Positions 46,500 to 55,412 are shown, numbered from the stretch's first letter. The stretch: 64,000 nt of DNA from Macrostomum hystrix (GCA_950097015.1 CATNEN010000001.1:21576001-21640000), one strand, 5' to 3'. Notes: generated by a model not told the origin, from the sequence alone. Translations and numbers: made by a program.

Positions 46500-47472
46500 A
46501 ATCAAAGCCCGTCCTTTTCTCCTGCTGAATAGCAAACGCAGGTAGGTGTTTTTCAGATAGAATAAAATACAAAAGGCTACAATACTATTTTTACAGAGAC
46601 CTTTAAATAAAAAGACGAGTTAAAAAATAACCTACTTTTCGGAAGAAATGAGCTTCTCAGGGACTCTTGCCTTGTTGATGATCTTGAAGTACTTCTTCGC
46701 TTCTAAATATTAGTACTACTAAGCTTAAAAATATTTAATAATCAAGCACTAATTTATTTGGAAACTACGAGTATTATAGGGCCAGTTGTGTTGCAAACTG
46801 GAGGTGAGGGGTTAGGTACTGCGGGGTTGGCCTGTTTCTACAGCGCATTGTTCTCCATCGTACACGATTCTCGCTGGCACGTAGCTTTCCTAGAAAGAAA
46901 CAAAAAATTTCTTTTTAACGTCTAGTTACTGAAGATGTTTCAGTGTCACAAAATGCTAAACCCTGGAATGAGTCTGCTTGGACATTAGCCGAATATTTTT
47001 TGCCGCCAAGTAAAATAAAAAATGAAAAAATATTTTCTACACAGCGAATTTGATTCCATTGTTAGGAATGGAGCAGCCTTTTATTCATTGCCCGCAATCC
47101 TAGTATAGCGTGGCCATCAAATTAGTCTATTCTTTAACCCTTCTGCTTGCATACTCAGACAGAACTTTGAACTGGCAGTTGCTAGGCTGGACCTTAAACT
47201 TCACAGTTAAATAGATCTGTTCCAAACGTGTGCATGAATCTTTTCGAATTCAATTGAAGCATGCACTGGACTCGATCTCAATCTCAATCTCAATCGATGT
47301 CAACTATTCTCAGGACACGGGAGAGATGAGTCACTGGAGACATGAGACACGGGACAAGGAGAGACACGAGACACGGACAGATGATACATGAGAGAAATGA
47401 GACACAGGAGAGATTTGACACGAGAGAGATGAGACGTCTGTAATTGAAAAGGCAGTATCTTCACCCACTGTG

Positions 47473-47610
47473 AAAAAGGTGGGTGTCGTCTTAGAGCAGG
47501 CGATTATCACCGAATCGAACCGCACAGTGTAGGATGTTCATTCGACCGGACAGCAACGGACCAAAGGTTACTGCTAGCTCAAGACCACCTCGCCTGCTCT
47601 GTGGCCCACC
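47473..47610 (-). ncRNA. Candidate structured small RNA, copy A
   Basis: GGTGGGCCAC-AGAGCAGGCGA...TCGCCTGCTCT-AAGACGACACCCACC-TTTTT; loop motif TTGAGCTAGCAGTAAC. Confidence 0.65.
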
Positions 47611-47682
47611 GCTTGAGCTGCGCACCGGCTGTGTTGATTATTTTAATGCAGCCAGAGTCGCCCATGACCATCGCCCATCGCA

Positions 47683-48281
47683 TACTCAGCAACAGCTAAA
47701 CCCCCCCAACTCACGCTGTCACACGGGCACAAAAGTTAAGCAATGTCTTTAATTCTAGTCTCAGTATCGTGTGTAGGAACCACGAGCATGCAAAAGTGCC
47801 ATGACTCGTCGTGGCATCCTGATCACCAGCCGGTTGATGAACTCTTGGGGCAGCTGCTGCCATGCATTCAGCACCGCCAGTCGCAACTGTTCAGCATTCT
47901 GTGGGTCATCCTGCTGAACTCTTCGCTTTACAAAGTCCCAGACATGCTCGATGGGGTTCATGTCTGGAGACTTTGACGGCCAGTTCAATGTGCGAATGCC
48001 GAGCTGCTCCTTCAGCAGCTGCACGTGTGCTGCTCGATGTGGCGCAGCGTTGTCGTCTTGAAGCATGCAGTTCTGCGGGCCGCCAAAGGTTGTCGTAGCA
48101 AATGTCGTAGCAACCAGTGGGTTGAGTTGCGCCATGCACCCCCTCCCCAAATCCCCATGCCGCACTTTGCGCTCGCGTCTGGCGGCGGCAGCCTTCACAC
48201 ATTTCTGAGTCACCGATGGCATACAAAACTTTTGGGCCGTGTGACAGCGTGAGTTGGGGAGGGTTTAGCTGTTGCTGAGTA
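47683..48281 (-). mobile_element. Internally deleted Tc1 (DD34E) transposon, ~600 bp
   Basis: ~55-bp TIRs (TACTCAGCAACAGCTAAACCC..CAACTCACGCTGTCACACGG..CAAAAGTT) with TA at the ends; retains QDDNAAPH...WPSKSPDMNPIEHVW with 34 aa between D and E. Confidence 0.93.
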
Positions 48282-48677
48282 TAGATTACGCAGGTGCAGA
48301 CAAATTTGGACTTCTCATCCACAGTACACTACTGACAGATGAAAGTGAGTAGGATTCAATGTAAATTTTGATGGCTGCTTTTCCAACGAAAAATATCACT
48401 TGAAATAGAATATTTGAGAGTAATAGCTTATAGTAGGATAGTGCCAAAAATCTCGAGCAGAAGAACTGAAGAATTTCCTGAGTCGTCCTGTCGGAAACGT
48501 TGGCGCGTACGACTTCAGCACCAGGGAGCTGATGTACCTTAATTACCCGCATACCTCAACGACGTCTCCGTTCGGCAGAGCTAGTGCAGGGGCAGTGCCA
48601 AAAGTTTGTCTCAGGAGCCATGTGACATTTCAGAAAAAAGTCTCACAAAATGTTAATAAAAAGCAAAGCGGGCATCT

Positions 48678-48722
48678 AAACTGGGTGCCGATTCGGAGCA
48701 GGGAATGTTGCCGGGTCCGACT
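48678..48722 (-). pseudogene. Small RNA copy B, 3' half only
   Basis: Plus strand CTGGGTGCCGATTCGGAGCAGGGAATGTTGCCGGGTC matches the other copies; the rest is replaced by the 38-bp satellite. Confidence 0.65.
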
Positions 48723-48751
48723 AGACTAACTAAATTTGCTCGCATGTACAT

Positions 48752-51700
48752 AGCACCAAATAAACAACACAGTACCCATTAAAGTGCACAGCACCGAATA
48801 CACCACACAGTACCCATTAAAATGCACAGCACTGAATAAACCACACAGTACCCATTAAAGTGCACAGCACTGAATTAACCACACAGTACCCATTAAAGTG
48901 CACAGCACCGAATAAACCACACAGTACCCATTAAAGTGCACAGCACCGAATACACCACACAGTACCCATTAAAGTGCACAGCACCAAATAAACAACACAG
49001 TACCCATTAAAGTGCACAGCACCGAATACACCACACAGTACCCATTAAAATGCACAGCACTGAATAAACAACACAGTACCCATTAAAGTGCACAGCACTG
49101 AATAAACCACACAGTACCCATTAAAGTGCACAGCACCGAATAAACCACACAGTACCCATTAAAGTGCACAGCACTGAATAAACCACACAGTACCCATTAA
49201 AGTGCACAGCACCGAATAAACCACACAGTACCCATTAAAGTGCACAGCACCGAATAAACCACACAGTACCCATTAAAGTGCACAGCACCGAATAAACCAC
49301 ACAGTACCCATTAAAGTGCACAGCACCGAATAAACCACACAGTACCCATTAAAGTGCACAGCACCGAATAAACCACACAGTACCCATTAAAGTGCACAGC
49401 ACTGAATAAACCACACAGTACCCATTAAAGTGCACAGCACCGAATAAACCACACAGTACCCATTAAAGTGCACAGCACCGAATAAACCACACAGTACCCA
49501 TTAAAGTGCACAGCACTGAATAAACCACACAGTACCCATTAAAGTGCACAGCACCGAATACACCACACAGTACCCATTAAAGTGCACAGCACTGAATAAA
49601 CCAAACAGTACCCATTAAAGTGCACAGCACTGAATAAACCACACAGTACCCATTAAAGTGCACAGCACTGAATAAACCACACAGTACCCAATAAAGTGCA
49701 CAGCACTGAATAAACCACACAGTACCCATTAAAGTGCACAGCACCGAATAAACCACACAGTACCCATTAAAGTGCACAGCACTGAATAAACCACACAGTA
49801 CCCATTAAAGTGCACAGCACTGAATAAACCACACAGTACCCATTAAAGTGCACAGCACCGAATACACCACACAGTACCCATTAAAGTGCACAGCACTGAA
49901 TAAACCACACAGTACCCATTAAAGTGCACAGCACCGAATAAACCACACAGTACCCATTAAAGTGCACAGCACCGAATAAACCACACAGTACCCATTAAAG
50001 TGCACAGCACCGAATACACCACACAGTACCCATTAAAGTGCACAGCACTGAATAAACCACACAGTACCCATTAAAGTGCACAGCACCGAATAAACCACAC
50101 AGTACCCATTAAAGTGCACAGCACCGAATAAACCACACAGTACCCATTAAAGTGCACAGCACCGAATAAACCACACAGTACCCATTAAAGTGCACAGCAC
50201 CGAATAAACCACACAGTACCCATTAAAGTGCACAGCACCGAATAAACCACACAGTACCCATTAAAGTGCACAGCACCGAATAAACCACACAGCACCCATT
50301 AAAGTGCACAGCACTGAATAAACCACATAGTACCCATTAAAGTGCACAGCACTGAATAAACCACACAGTACCCATTAAAGTGCACAGCACTGAATAAACC
50401 ACACAGTACCCATTAAAGTGCACAGCACTGAATAAACCACACAGTACCCATTAAAGTGCACAGCACTGAATAAACCACACAGTACCCATTAAAGTGCACA
50501 GCACCGAATAAACCACACAGTACCCATTAAAGTGCACAGCACTGAATAAACCACACAGTACCCATTAAAGTGCACAGCACTGAATAAACCACACAGTACC
50601 CATTAAAGTGCACAGCACCGAATAAACCACACAGTACCCATTAAAGTGCACAGCACCGAATACACCACACAGTACCCATTAAAGTGCACAGCACTGAATA
50701 AACCAAACAGTACCCATTAAAGTGCACAGCACTGAATAAACCACACAGTACCCATTAAAGTGCACAGCACTGAATAAACCACACAGTACCCATTAAAGTG
50801 CACAGCACTGAATAAACCACACAGTACCCATTAAAGTGCACAGCACTGAATAAACCACACAGTACCCATTAAAGTGCACAGCACCGTATAAACCACACAG
50901 TACCCATTAAAGTGCACAGCACTGAATAAACCACACAGTACCCATTAAAGTGCACAGCACCGAATAAACCACACAGTACCCATTAAAGTGCACAGCACCG
51001 AATAAACCACACAGTACCCATTAAAGTGCACAGCACCGAATAAACCACACAGTACCCATTAAAGTGCACAGCACCGAATAAACCACACAGTACCCATTAA
51101 AGTGCACAGCACCGAATAAACCACACAGTACCCATTAAAGTGCACAGCACCGAATAAACCACACAGTACCCATTAAAGTGCACAGCACTGAATAAACCAC
51201 ACAGTACCCATTAAAGTGCACAGCACCGAATAAACCACACAGTACCCATTAAAGTGCACAGCACCGAATACACCACACAGTACCCATTAAAGTGCACAGC
51301 ACTGAATAAACCAAACAGTACCCATTAAAGTGCACAGCACTGAATAAACCACACAGTACCCATTAAAGTGCACAGCACTGAATAAACCACACAGTACCCA
51401 TTAAAGTGCACAGCACTGAATAAACCACATAGTACCCATTAAAGTGCACAGCACTGAATTAACCACACAGTACCCATTAAAGTGCACAGCACTGAATAAA
51501 CCACACAGTACCCATTAAAGTGCACAGCACTGAATAAACCACACAGTACCCATTAAAGTGCACAGCACTGAATAAACCACACAGTACCCATTAAAGTGCA
51601 CAGCACCGAATAAACCACACAGTACCCATTAAAGTGCACAGCACTGAATAAACCACACAGTACCCATTAAAGTGCACAGCACTGAATAAACCACACAGTA

Positions 51701-51978
51701 CCCATTAAAGTGCACAGCACCGAATAAACCACACAGTACCCATTAAAGTGCACAGCACTGAATAAACAACACAGTACCCATTAAAGTGCACAGCACCGTA
51801 TAAACCACACAGTACCCATTAAAGTGCACAGCACCGTATAAACCACACAGTACCCATTAAAGTGCACAGCACTGAATAAACCACACAGTACCCATTAAAG
51901 TGCACAGCACCGTATAAACCACACAGTACCCATTAAAGTGCACAGCACCGAATAAACCACACAGTACCCATTAAAGTG
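48752..51978. repeat. 3.2-kb satellite, 38-bp unit (CACAGTACCCATTAAAGTGCACAGCAC(C/T)GAATAAACCA), ~85 copies
   Basis: Highly homogeneous tandem array without unique spacers. Confidence 0.98.
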
Positions 51979-52167
51979 ATAAGAAGTTTTTCACTGTCAA
52001 CTGGGAAAAGCTATTGCTCGATGCAGATCGAAATGCATCGAGTTAAAGATCGAACATCAGTCTTACCTATTAGGTATTCTCCAGACAATTAGAAAACCTA
52101 CTAATTATTGGGCAAATACATATTTCAGAAAAAATGAGTTTGACCAAAAGCAAAGCTAGCTGGTGGC

Positions 52168-52292
52168 AAAAGTGGGTGTCAATTTAGAGCAGGGAATTTT
52201 GCCGGGTCGGACCAGACGACATGTCCAGCCGACCCGACAGAGTGAGGAGTTGCTGCTGGCTCAAGCCCAAACTCCCTGCTCTGCGGCCCACC
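52168..52292 (-). ncRNA. Candidate structured small RNA, copy C (Y/sbRNA-like architecture)
   Basis: GGTGGGCCGC-AGAGCAGGGAG-TTTGGGCTTGAGCCAGCAGCAACTCC-[hairpin TGTCGGGTCGG/CCGACCCGGCA]-TTCCCTGCTCT-AAATTGACACCCAC-TTTT. Confidence 0.75.
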
Positions 52293-52315
52293 GGTTGAGT
52301 TAAGCACGGACTCAG

Positions 52316-52411
52316 CTATTTGAATCCAATTGAAGCTAATCTCGCAAGCGGCTCAGCTAGTGCTGCGTAAATTTTCGTCCCCGTGCGCATCATGCTACTG
52401 AGTGTGAGTAG
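52316..52411 (-). promoter_or_regulatory. Putative external Pol III promoter of copy C (TATA-like, PSE-like, CTACT..AGTAG dyad)
   Basis: Motifs conserved at equivalent distances next to copies C, E, F, G, H while the spacers diverge. Confidence 0.55.
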
Positions 52412-52696
52412 GCTTCGCTTTTGTTTGTGTCTTGGTCAAGCATTTACTACAGCCTCGAAACTTCACAAAAGCACAGATATGAGAAGAAACAGTGTTTTAA
52501 TACCTGTGACGAATCCGAATCGTCATTTATTTGTGCTTCGCTAAATAGTTTTAATGTTATGGCTTACCAAAAATCCTTCTACTCAACATTTTTATCTGAG
52601 AATGAGCAGATCTACGACGCTTGGTGACTGAGATAAGATTTCATTAAATTTCAGATGTAAAAATCACGAAAAAATAGAGAAGCAAGGATCGACCAT

Positions 52697-52770
52697 AAAA
52701 AGTTGGTGCCGGTTTGGCAAGTGAATGCTAGAAATTGCTTTTGGCTCAAGTTCAGATATCCCGGCCCACC
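52697..52770 (-). pseudogene. Small RNA copy D, internally deleted
   Basis: Retains GGTGGGCCG, TTGAGCCAAAAGCAATT and a terminal T5, but lacks the upper stem and variable hairpin. Confidence 0.55.
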
Positions 52771-52936
52771 TACTCAAATTCGTGCTTTCCGTCATTCTAC
52801 GCTCTTGATTCAAATTTTACGAGCTACAATGAAAACCAATTCTCAGAGCAGTCAATCTGCAAAAGTACTAGTAAAAGTAAATGTGCATCATGTTCACGGA
52901 AGGCTGTCAGCTGCCAGGGCAAGAAAAAGCTGCAGC

Positions 52937-53062
52937 AAAAGTGGGTATCGAATTGGAGCAGGGAATTTTGCCGAGTCGAACCGGACAGGGCGTCCAGCCG
53001 ACCCGATAGCAATTAGGAGTTGCTGTTGGCTCAAACCCAGAGTCCCTGCTCCGCGGCCCACC
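52937..53062 (-). ncRNA. Candidate structured small RNA, copy E
   Basis: Upper stem GGAGCAGGGA/TCCCTGCTCC (compensatory A-U to G-C), motif TTGAGCCAACAGCAACTCC, T4 end. Confidence 0.75.
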
Positions 53063-53456
53063 GATTGAGTTTGGCTTCGATTCTACTATTTAGAGGCTTC
53101 AGCTAGTCGATGTATTGCAAGCAGTTTAGCTTTCGCTGAGAAACTGGCGTGATATTTGCTCACTGCACTACTGACACAGAATGATAAGTAGCATTCAACG
53201 TAAATTAAAACAATTACTCGTACTTCGTACTCGTATTCAAAATTCATCAAGGTACCCAGTTAAGCTACACTGTTTAGTAATTGGACATTTAGTTAATACC
53301 ACAGACAATGCATAATCTGTGGCTAATGCCGTGTATTCAAGCATATATGATCTGAAGTATGTGAATGTAAAACTGTTTCAAAAAGTCTCTCGACTCTCAT
53401 TAATAAGAAGTTCCTTTCCTAAAATTCAGGGAGGATAATCGATCAATTCAGCTGGC

Positions 53457-53584
53457 AAAAGTGGGTGTCGGGTTAGTGTGGGGGAGTAGCCACAAGTCCC
53501 AGCAGTTTTTACCGGGACTTAGCGTGGCAAAGGAGCGGAATTGCTTTTGGCTCAAATCCAATATCCCCCACACTGCGGCCCACC
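53457..53584 (-). ncRNA. Candidate structured small RNA, copy F (divergent subfamily)
   Basis: Upper stem AGTGTGGGGGA/TCCCCCACACT and a different variable hairpin (GCCAC..AAGTCCC/GGGACTTGTGGC), same termini and loop motif. Confidence 0.75.
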
Positions 53585-53915
53585 AACACAAGTCTGTGCT
53601 CAAACTGCTATTTATGCTGCTCAAATGGTACATTGTGCAATAGTTGATTACAAAGCATATTGTTTAAAGCATAAATTTGTAATGACACTACTTCTATCTC
53701 GTCCACCAGTAGTGTGTCATGTATATTTACAGCGTTTTTCATTGTCAACTGGGAAAAGCTATTGCTCGATGCAGATCGAAATGCATCGAGTTAAAGATCG
53801 AACATCAGTCTTACCTATTAGGTACTCTCTAGACAATTTGAAAACCGACTAACCATTGGGCAAAGACATGTTTCAGAAAAAATGAGTTTGACCAAAAGCA
53901 AAGCTAGCTGGTGGC

Positions 53916-54040
53916 AAAAGTGGGTGTCAATTTAGAGCAGGGAATTTTGCCGGGTCGGACCAGACGACATGTCCAGCCGACCCGACAGAGTGAGGAGTTG
54001 CTGCTGGCTCAAGCCCAAACTCCCTGCTCTGCGGCCCACC
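53916..54040 (-). ncRNA. Candidate structured small RNA, copy G (appears identical to copy C)
   Basis: Lies in a ~425-bp duplication of 51987-52410. Confidence 0.75.
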
Positions 54041-54360
54041 GGTTGAGCTGAGCACGGACTCAGCTATTTGAGTCCAATTGAAGCTAATCTCGCAAGCGGC
54101 TCAGCTAGTGCTGCGTAAATTTTCGTCCCCGCGCGCATCATGCTACTGAGTGTGAGTATAGGCTTATTTACAGCGTTTTTTATTTTAATGCATGGTGAAA
54201 TGCATGATATTATAAAAGATCGAATACCAGTGCTAATTTGTAGATGTTTTCCATTTGGACAAAAATAGTATATGTTACTGTACATTTGCTTAAAACGTTT
54301 ATAATTTATGTGACAGCTGCTAATAGGCTCACAAAAAGCAAAGCAAAGCAAGCTAGCGGG

Positions 54361-54463
54361 AAAAGTGGGTGTCAATTTAGAGCAGGGAATGTTGCCGGGT
54401 CGACCCGACATAGAGAGGAGTTGCTGCTGGCTCAAGTCCAAACCCCCTGCTCCGCGGCCCACA
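54361..54463 (-). ncRNA. Candidate structured small RNA, copy H (short variable hairpin)
   Basis: Upper stem GGAGCAGGGGG/TTCCCTGCTCT needs three G-U pairs that form only on the minus strand; T4 end. Confidence 0.72.
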
Positions 54464-54684
54464 GGTCGATTCGGACTCAATTCTATGATATATAGATGCT
54501 GTGTAGTATGTTGTGCAAGTGGTTTAGATTTCGCGAAGGACTTGTGCGTTTTTAGACATGTCATACTACTTGCTTGTAAAGATGAGTAGACTGCGCTTGT
54601 TTCATTTTTTAATATATATCCTCTCTTACATTTTTGTAAAAGCGTTTTTTATTAAGTCATCTAAGTTGTCATAGATTTTGTCCG

Positions 54685-54822
54685 AAAAGATGCGATTTAG
54701 CATAAGGAACTAGCCATATACCCCGACTGTCACCATGCATGGTGACGACGGGGACACATGTGCGGCAAGAAGCGGAATTGCCTTGGCTCTCAAAACCATA
54801 ATCCCTGACGCTGCGACCCACC
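54685..54822 (-). pseudogene. Small RNA copy I, degenerate (F-like subfamily)
   Basis: GGTGGGTCGC start, GAGCCAAGGCAATTCCGC motif, long variable hairpin; broken terminal stem and an internal T4. Confidence 0.55.
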
Positions 54823-55412
54823 AGTTACAACTAAAGAAATAACTTCCTATTATGCTTGTATTACCCGCAATTGTGTATTAAACTAGTAGCTTGCCGTCGG
54901 CAATGCCGGATTTTCTGAGTGTTAACTGTCCACAAAATCTATTAAAATATATTAAATTCTAAATTTAAACAGAATCATCTCTTCAATTTTTAGCAGCATT
55001 TTTTACTGGTAAAAATATCAACTTACTCGTAGAATAACAAGGTAGTTTGTTTCGTTTTTAGCGTATCGATCTCTATAAAAATATTTTGTTGTAAATGGTT
55101 ACAAGTCTGAGAATTTCTGTGCAAGTTTAGATTTTTAAGTTCTTAGAAGTTAGCATATGTGCTAGGATTTTTCCACAAAAATCGTTCATCATTCTATCGA
55201 CTGCTTAAAGCTAAATTTTATTAGCAGCTTCAATCTGTTTCGCTTCAATTAGGCCTAAGATTAATTTTTAAGCTGGTGACAATTGTCGTATTTCTTCATT
55301 TTTAGCCAGTAGGCCTAACTGGGTCATCGTCAAGTATTATTAAGCCTAGGCCCACCCTATTTATTAGTCAACTATTATTAATTAATTGTTCTCTTTGCTT
55401 CTGCTTAGCAAT

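Follow-up and report, generated by a model that had tools for sequence, protein, structure and literature searches.

For flatworms, the repertoire of small non-coding RNAs is poorly known. A survey of schistosomes published in 2009 found neither Y RNAs nor vault RNAs, and Y RNAs had been reported only from vertebrates and nematodes (PMC2770079). According to a paper from 2022, vault RNAs had previously been seen in one flatworm only, Macrostomum lignano, and five putative vault RNAs were described in Fasciola (PMC8824774). Y RNAs and the stem-bulge RNAs (sbRNAs) carry an upper-stem motif, (A/G)UG-CA(C/U), and a loop motif, UUA(U/C)C (PMC4450293), and the Ro60 site in Y RNA has been described as a helix of 7 bp that contains a bulged C and, on the opposite strand, a bulge of 3 nt (PMC4726728). 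Here, we describe a cluster of small RNA genes from Macrostomum hystrix. It lies in a window of 64,000 nucleotides (G000:C1:21576001-21640000) from a 220-Mb assembly of 42 contigs, and the protein fragments recognised in this window (kinase, ankyrin/ion-channel and DDE transposase) are eukaryotic. The nine copies in the cluster, labelled A to I, are likely to be tandemly duplicated genes for an undescribed structured RNA of ~105-140 nt, a third class that stands beside the Y and vault RNAs and is a member of neither.

A covariance model built from six of the copies, termed R1, was used to rescore both the cluster and the genome. On the minus strand of the window it returned seven full-length copies, with scores of 66-128 bits and E values from 1e-12 to 1e-26, and it also matched the internally deleted copy D (34 bits); copy B, a 3' fragment, was matched by nhmmer only, at 48678-48727. 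A first-pass annotation of the window had listed nine co-oriented copies on this strand, and all nine are present, with starts within 1-2 bases of those it gave. The layout that it had read in them is likewise found: a 5' end with the sequence GGUGGGCCGC, an upper stem of 11-12 bp, a conserved motif, a variable hairpin, the sequence AANNYGRYACCCAC and a terminal UUUU. Copy F represents a second subtype, with the loop AGCCAAAAG and a variable hairpin unlike that of the first subtype. Two copies are damaged internally. In copy D the variable hairpin is missing, as is the upper stem's 3' strand, which probably makes it a pseudogene, and copy I, in which the conserved hairpin is altered, the 3' lower stem has a 5-nt gap and no upstream elements can be recognised, may be another.

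Conservation is confined to the genes themselves. Non-duplicate copies are 56-85% identical in their gene bodies, while the flanks lie at the shuffle baseline (54-67% identity over 150 nt, compared with 58.6% after shuffling). The exceptions are the C/G pair and the J/K pair of a second cluster described below. That the spacers are largely unrelated, as had been stated, therefore holds for most of the 150-nt flanks and fails for copies C and G, which belong to a duplication of ~416 bp (51995-52410 and 53743-54158).

Single-sequence folds and RNAalifold agree on a three-way junction, and the single-sequence fold z-scores range from -4.7 to -5.6 in five of the seven full-length copies. The RNAalifold structure comprises a terminal helix of 6 bp (GGUGGG/CCCACY), a 2-bp CG/YG step, an upper stem of 12 bp, a small conserved hairpin and the base of a second hairpin. 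Two small asymmetric loops flank the conserved CG/YG step and are followed by the covarying upper stem of 11-12 bp; with these loops and an unpaired C, the bulged or interrupted terminal stem that had been predicted is present. The conserved hairpin has 7 bp and a 9-nt loop, GGNYUUG-AGCCANNAG-CAAYUCC, and direct reading reveals a pyrimidine-pyrimidine mismatch (C/C, U/C or U/U) at its central position in all cases. The second hairpin differs wholly between subtypes in both sequence and length, yet is formed in every case. The upper stem also varies freely, with covariation, as exemplified by AGAGCAGGG, AGUGUGGGG and AGUCUGAGG.

This fold is supported by compensatory changes, assessed in an alignment of nine sequences, eight of them distinct. 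Standard pairs occupy 92.5% of the cells, compared to 40-50% in controls with the 3' partners shifted along the alignment by 1-3 columns. Both sides have changed in 10 of the 32 pairs, including 7 of the 12 pairs of the upper stem, and the observed covariation score was reached by none of 500 shuffled alignments. The alignment was fitted to the model, a procedure that favours structure, but a MAFFT alignment yields the same double changes.

The 150-200 nt upstream of all copies were compared with the corresponding regions of Y, vault, U6, U1, signal recognition particle (SRP) and RNase P genes found elsewhere in the assembly. In the family, a TATA-like box, most often (T/C)AAATAG, is located at -30 to -34, and an inverted repeat, TACT-N(7-16)-AGTA, occupies about -105 to -140. 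Nine of ten copies have this repeat, at -109 to -140 (starts at -109 to -128, AGTA half near -107); it is absent upstream of copy I. With a background of 0.028 per 60-nt slot for the loose TACT...AGTA pattern, finding it six or more times independently at one fixed position far exceeds chance. A tight N3 form of the element, TTTCTACTNNNAGTAGA, is located at the same distance upstream of all three Y genes and five of the six vault genes, again together with a TATA-like box at -30, and the inverted repeat is absent upstream of four U6 genes, one U1 gene, two SRP genes and one RNase P gene. The TATA-like box resembles that of vault and SRP genes, and copy F and the vault gene vt_4, for example, both carry ATAAATAGCAG. 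At the other end, a run of four or five T residues directly follows the terminal stem in every family copy, as it does in the Y and vault genes of this genome. The signals typical of RNA polymerase III (Pol III) that the first-pass annotation had reported thus exist at the sequence level, in the form of the TATA-like box, a distal element common with the Y genes and the T4 run after the stem. Because box, distal element and terminator resemble those of Y and vault genes, the family can be regarded as a third RNA of that general type, and from the TATA box, the position of the terminator and the parallel to the Y and vault genes we infer transcription by Pol III. As a separate observation, the U6 (L036-L039), SRP (L049-L050) and RNase P (L051) genes have in common an upstream ACGAAAA and a TATA box at -30. 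The ACGAAAA is found at ~-60 in U6 and SRP genes and further upstream in RNase P, for which the mapped start is uncertain; it constitutes a second predicted type of upstream promoter, distinct from that of the Y, vault and new-family genes.

Both established classes are encoded elsewhere in the genome. The Rfam model RF00019 (Y_RNA) returned three loci below threshold, with 29-36 bits (the best at 35.9 against a gathering score of 38). Direct reading identifies them as canonical Y RNAs that begin with GGYUGGUCCGG and end with CUUGACYARCCUUUUU; they carry GGUCCGR, CUUGAC(C/U), a loop starting with UUAAC and a T5 end, and a fourth copy lies 1 kb from another Y gene. Six loci scored above the gathering threshold of RF00006 (Vault), at 44-56 bits. 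All six possess a box A (AGCCAAGCGGTTACTTCG) and fold as a panhandle, and three of them (vt_3, vt_4 and vt_5) have a clear box B (GGTTCGANNCC). The presence of canonical Y and vault RNAs implies that their roles are already filled.

The copies in the cluster were matched to neither class. Rfam, searched over the whole window at gathering scores, gave no match on the family, in line with the first-pass annotation, which had recognised no known family. At E<=10 over positions 52100-54900 there was no match to Y_RNA or Vault, with a Y_RNA model that does find the Y RNAs of this genome, and the only entry listed is a noise match to HOTAIRM1_3 (13 bits). A covariance model of the genome's own Y RNAs, R3, run with filters off, retrieved no family copy at E<=10. 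Profiles of the family, the Y RNAs and the vault RNAs were also compared using nhmmer, and each found its own members only, with no cross-matches. A motif-by-motif comparison gave a mixed picture for the lower stem and a negative one for the upper stem and the loop. The lower stem of the family, GGGCCGC / YGRYACCCAC, has an unpaired C and a 3-nt RYA opposite, and both its sequence and its relative positions are unlike the GGUCCGR / UUGACC of Y RNA. Copies C, G and H had been read as GGGCCG / UUGAC; the UUGAC does occur in these three copies, but two of them are identical duplicates, and the consensus is YGRYA. The upper-stem motif (A/G)UG-CA(C/U) is not conserved in the family, with GUG/CAC in copy F only, and the loop motif UUA(U/C)C is absent, the family loop beginning with UUUGG or AUUGG compared to UUAAC in the Y RNAs of this genome. 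With canonical Y RNAs located elsewhere, the upper-stem and loop motifs not conserved and the Rfam, R3 and nhmmer searches negative, the assignment to the Y/sbRNA family proposed in the first-pass annotation is not upheld; its fallback, a new class of Pol III RNA, fits best given the structure, the signals and the lack of a family match. We therefore consider that the family is probably a new Y/vault-like class of RNA, predicted to be transcribed by Pol III.

Some similarity to Y RNAs nevertheless remains. Like Y RNAs and sbRNAs, the family members are ~100 nt long, have paired 5' and 3' ends, an oligo-U tail and a variable central part, and are encoded by clustered genes that each have their own upstream promoter, with the same upstream elements as the Y genes of this genome. 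The parts also follow each other as in these Y RNAs, with a lower helix, then an unpaired C, 2 bp, an asymmetric A-rich loop on the 3' strand, the upper stem, a loop and UUUU. The genes could represent a diverged paralogous branch of Y RNA, comparable to the sbRNAs that exist beside CeY RNA in nematodes, whose bulged lower stem would be bound by Ro60 or by a second TROVE protein. One possible pairing yields a 7-bp helix, a bulged C and an opposite 3-nt bulge, which matches the published wording of the Ro60 site (PMC4726728), and the genome contains both a Ro60 ortholog and a second TROVE gene. When the family model was run with filters off over 28 kb containing six vault and three Y genes, it could be aligned over its whole length to each of the three Y genes (15.8, 7.9 and 6.4 bits) and to no vault gene. 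However, these scores are at noise level, because a chance match of 15.0 bits arose in 84 kb, and the reciprocal Y model, the Rfam Y_RNA model and nhmmer in both directions were all negative. GGUCCGR/UUGACC and the UG-CA and UUA(U/C)C motifs are missing, the 3-nt bulge of the family is situated below the unpaired C and that of Y RNA above it, and the three-way junction adds a conserved hairpin (loop AGCCANNAG) as a further difference from Y RNAs and sbRNAs. Taken together, we judge a Y RNA branch to be unlikely. In the arrangement of its parts the family recalls Y RNA, without being a demonstrable member, and the two may have a remote origin in common.

Far less probable is an origin from vault RNA (RF00006), by which the genes would be a paralogue whose internal promoter (boxes A and B) has been lost, with the divergent vtRNA2-1/nc886 of humans as a parallel. 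The likeness consists of a panhandle of 100-140 nt with a variable centre, its terminal stem being present in the family, of a T4 terminator, of several clustered paralogues, and of the TATA-like and inverted-repeat elements that both have in this genome, including the TATA context of vt_4. In addition, the family loop AGCCAGCAG is similar to the box A region AGCCAAGCGG of the vault genes, and copies A and E contain GGTTCGAnTCG, a match to box B at 10 of 11 positions, ~40 nt before the terminator. However, the string resembling box A is at +31 within a hairpin loop, and the family is without a box A at +10 followed by TTACTTCG; the one resembling box B is found in some copies only (it is missing in F, I, J and K) and falls within the stem of the variable hairpin, and no conserved box B exists. 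The Rfam Vault model, moreover, matches six other loci and none in the cluster, the family model matches none of the six vault genes, and nhmmer produced no cross-match.

Other structured RNAs were rejected by direct reading of the sequences. A telomerase RNA is ruled out, with the CUAACCC string in copy F only; for 7SK, the size does not fit and the GAUC motif is missing; the core motifs of hammerhead and other ribozymes are absent, with no Rfam match; and there is neither an Sm site nor a splice donor, as spliced-leader RNAs and Sm-class small nuclear RNAs would have. A tRNA origin found no support in the cluster, where Rfam gave no tRNA match, nor at the second-cluster locus L024, the only one to which ARAGORN was applied and where it called none. 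At that locus, a tRNA-like stretch, GGTTCGATTCCC, is located between the two copies (L024:1140-1210) and may be the head of a short interspersed element (SINE), while ARAGORN makes no call on it. In being a small, structured, taxon-limited family with tandem duplication and probable Pol III signals, the Macrostomum genes also recall snaR, BC200, 4.5SH and nc886. For those RNAs a source can be recognised (Alu, 7SL, tRNA or vault RNA), whereas no parent sequence was detected for the Macrostomum family.

The number and distribution of copies are those of a small gene family. Outside the window, the genome search with R1, in which 150 of the first-look candidates were scored and more diverged members could be missed, identified only C1:11745879-11746004 and 11747218-11747345. 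These two copies, J and K, form the second cluster (L024:880-1005 and L024:2219-2346), on the same contig as the window. A BLAST search of the whole genome with one copy gave four matches, all inside the window, and the exact 19-nt motif of the conserved hairpin is found genome-wide in seven family copies only. Matches with one or two mismatches are about as frequent as those of a reversed-pattern control, and seven of them, rescanned with the family model, yielded a single weak candidate. This sequence, L062:1479-1630 (G000:C1:18541453-18541604), scores 19 bits and may be the decayed relic of a copy, with a conserved hairpin resembling type 2 and the terminal stem missing. SINEs and miniature inverted-repeat transposable elements (MITEs) were ruled out, given about ten copies in two clusters on one contig and no terminal inverted repeats or tails, and a repeat search located inverted repeats at an inserted transposon only and none at the RNA gene copies. 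A dispersed transposon family is thus excluded, in line with the first-pass annotation, which had seen no typical MITE or SINE. That the cluster is a decaying, non-functional tandem repeat or a retired mobile-element family in which a hairpin merely persists, as its satellite, transposon remnant and truncated copies and the restriction to one contig might suggest, is very improbable, since compensatory double changes keep the stem, conservation ends at the gene borders, the T4 run and upstream motifs at set positions persist in flanks that are otherwise unrelated, and the copies number about ten, without terminal inverted repeats or tails.

Some findings weigh against a third class of functional RNA genes and have to be taken into account. 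Genome-wide, there are 422 occurrences of the strict palindrome TTCTACTNNNAGTAGA (e.g. L039:2393, L041:2123 and L027:2331), compared to 6 for its reversed control, and it is also present at sites where no small RNA gene is evident, so that it looks like a widespread promoter motif rather than a mark of Pol III. The spacer between the half-sites is variable in the family and longer than in the Y and vault genes. Several copies are damaged, with the upstream region of A split, D and B truncated and I divergent. The family may be young, given that a single contig holds every copy, and two metagenome pattern scans gave 0 and 2 matches, both of the latter being chance by the family model.

The cluster also holds other sequences (Table 1). 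An internally deleted element of the Tc1/mariner type is inserted ~72 nt upstream of copy A, between the TATA-like box and the distal TACT...AGTA element. Its ends (47682-47707 and 48257-48282) are 96% complementary, with terminal inverted repeats of 26-36 nt. The inverted repeat of copy A is in place only once the remnant is removed, which suggests that the insertion split the upstream region of this gene. A 38-bp satellite cuts off copy B, taking the place of its 5' part. Just downstream of copy A, a degenerate short tandem repeat of 16/32 nt, resembling GACACGGGAGACATGA, covers positions 47314-47435.

Table 1. Positions of the RNA gene copies, their upstream elements, the repeats within the cluster, and the genes for Y and vault RNA in this genome. 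Plain numbers are positions in the window.
Feature	Position	Strand	Basis or remark
Copy A, full length, 136 nt	47475-47610	-	R1 99.7 bits; single-sequence fold
Copy A, displaced distal element TACT-N14-AGTA	48330-48351	-	at ~-140 once transposon removed
Copy B, 3' fragment only, abuts 38-bp satellite	48678-48730	-	nhmmer 19.6 bits; alignment
Copy C, intact, 125 nt, identical to copy G	52168-52292	-	R1 128.5 bits
Copy C, TATA-like box	52315-52322	-	
Copy C, inverted repeat	52396-52410	-	
Copy D, internally deleted	52698-52770	-	R1 34.4 bits; fold z-score about 0
Copy E, intact	52937-53062	-	R1 127.6 bits
Copy E, TATA-like box	53085-53092	-	
Copy E, inverted repeat	53169-53190	-	
Copy F, intact, second subtype	53457-53584	-	R1 118.3 bits
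Copy F, TATA-like box	53609-53616	-	
Copy F, inverted repeat	53689-53711	-	
Copy G, intact	53916-54040	-	R1 128.5 bits
Copy G, TATA-like box	54063-54070	-	
Copy G, inverted repeat	54144-54158	-	
Copy H, intact, short variable hairpin, 103 nt	54361-54463	-	R1 100.4 bits
Copy H, TATA-like box	54487-54494	-	
Copy H, inverted repeat	54567-54588	-	
Copy I, divergent	54686-54822	-	R1 66.5 bits
Tc1/mariner-type element, internally deleted, 601 bp	47682-48282		inverted repeats; DDE_3 fragment, E 8e-11
38-bp satellite, 84.9 copies, 97% matching	48752-51978		Tandem Repeats Finder (TRF)
Vault RNA gene	G000:C3:3212080-3212190		Rfam Vault
Vault RNA gene	G000:C3:3144755-3144862		Rfam Vault
Vault RNA gene	G000:C3:3139818-3139925		Rfam Vault
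Vault RNA gene	G000:C39:6896976-6897102		Rfam Vault
Vault RNA gene	G000:C33:3636923-3637052		Rfam Vault
Vault RNA gene	G000:C33:3637598-3637724		Rfam Vault
Y RNA gene	L033:1501-1576	+	
Y RNA gene	L034:1501-1575	+	
Y RNA gene	L035:1499-1581	-	
Y RNA gene	L035:2501-2580	-	

Proteins that could partner such RNAs are encoded in the same genome. The Ro60 ortholog whose presence the first-pass annotation had proposed to check exists and contains TROVE and vWA_Ro60 domains (E 3.5e-61 to PDB Ro60). A second, divergent TROVE-domain gene lies on the minus strand of locus L048 (G000:C33:3752000-3759999), and a phmmer search of the PDB with one of its exons returned no match; a protein atlas likewise yielded no usable match for it. 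Two vault RNA genes are located on its contig, ~120 kb away. Genes for MVP were identified at two loci.

Based on these data, a mode of action for the third RNA class can be outlined, which we hold as a whole with moderate confidence. By analogy with the Y and vault genes, each gene would be transcribed independently by Pol III from an external promoter, with transcription ending at the T4 run, and La would bind at the resulting UUUU tail. The bulged lower stem might serve as a protein docking site, as in Y RNA, with Ro60, the second TROVE protein or another protein as candidates. The conserved AGCCANNAG hairpin loop may provide a functional surface, and the variable hairpin could be a tolerated or a specialising module. 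A bolder version of this model, in which the family is the dedicated RNA partner of the genus's second TROVE protein and both form a second, lineage-specific Ro-type particle with the AGCCANNAG hairpin as a handle, is speculative, and we regard it as rather improbable.

In one flatworm genome, a third family that matches no known one is found next to canonical Y and vault RNAs, and the upstream layout is common to all three. Should this third family be expressed, it would represent a new class of Y/vault-like RNA. Together with Ro60, an extra TROVE protein and MVP, the three RNA families would then make up a compact system that could show how such RNAs and proteins pair and how they diversify. 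Macrostomum is a laboratory model in which transgenesis and RNA interference are available, which makes tests of these predictions practical.

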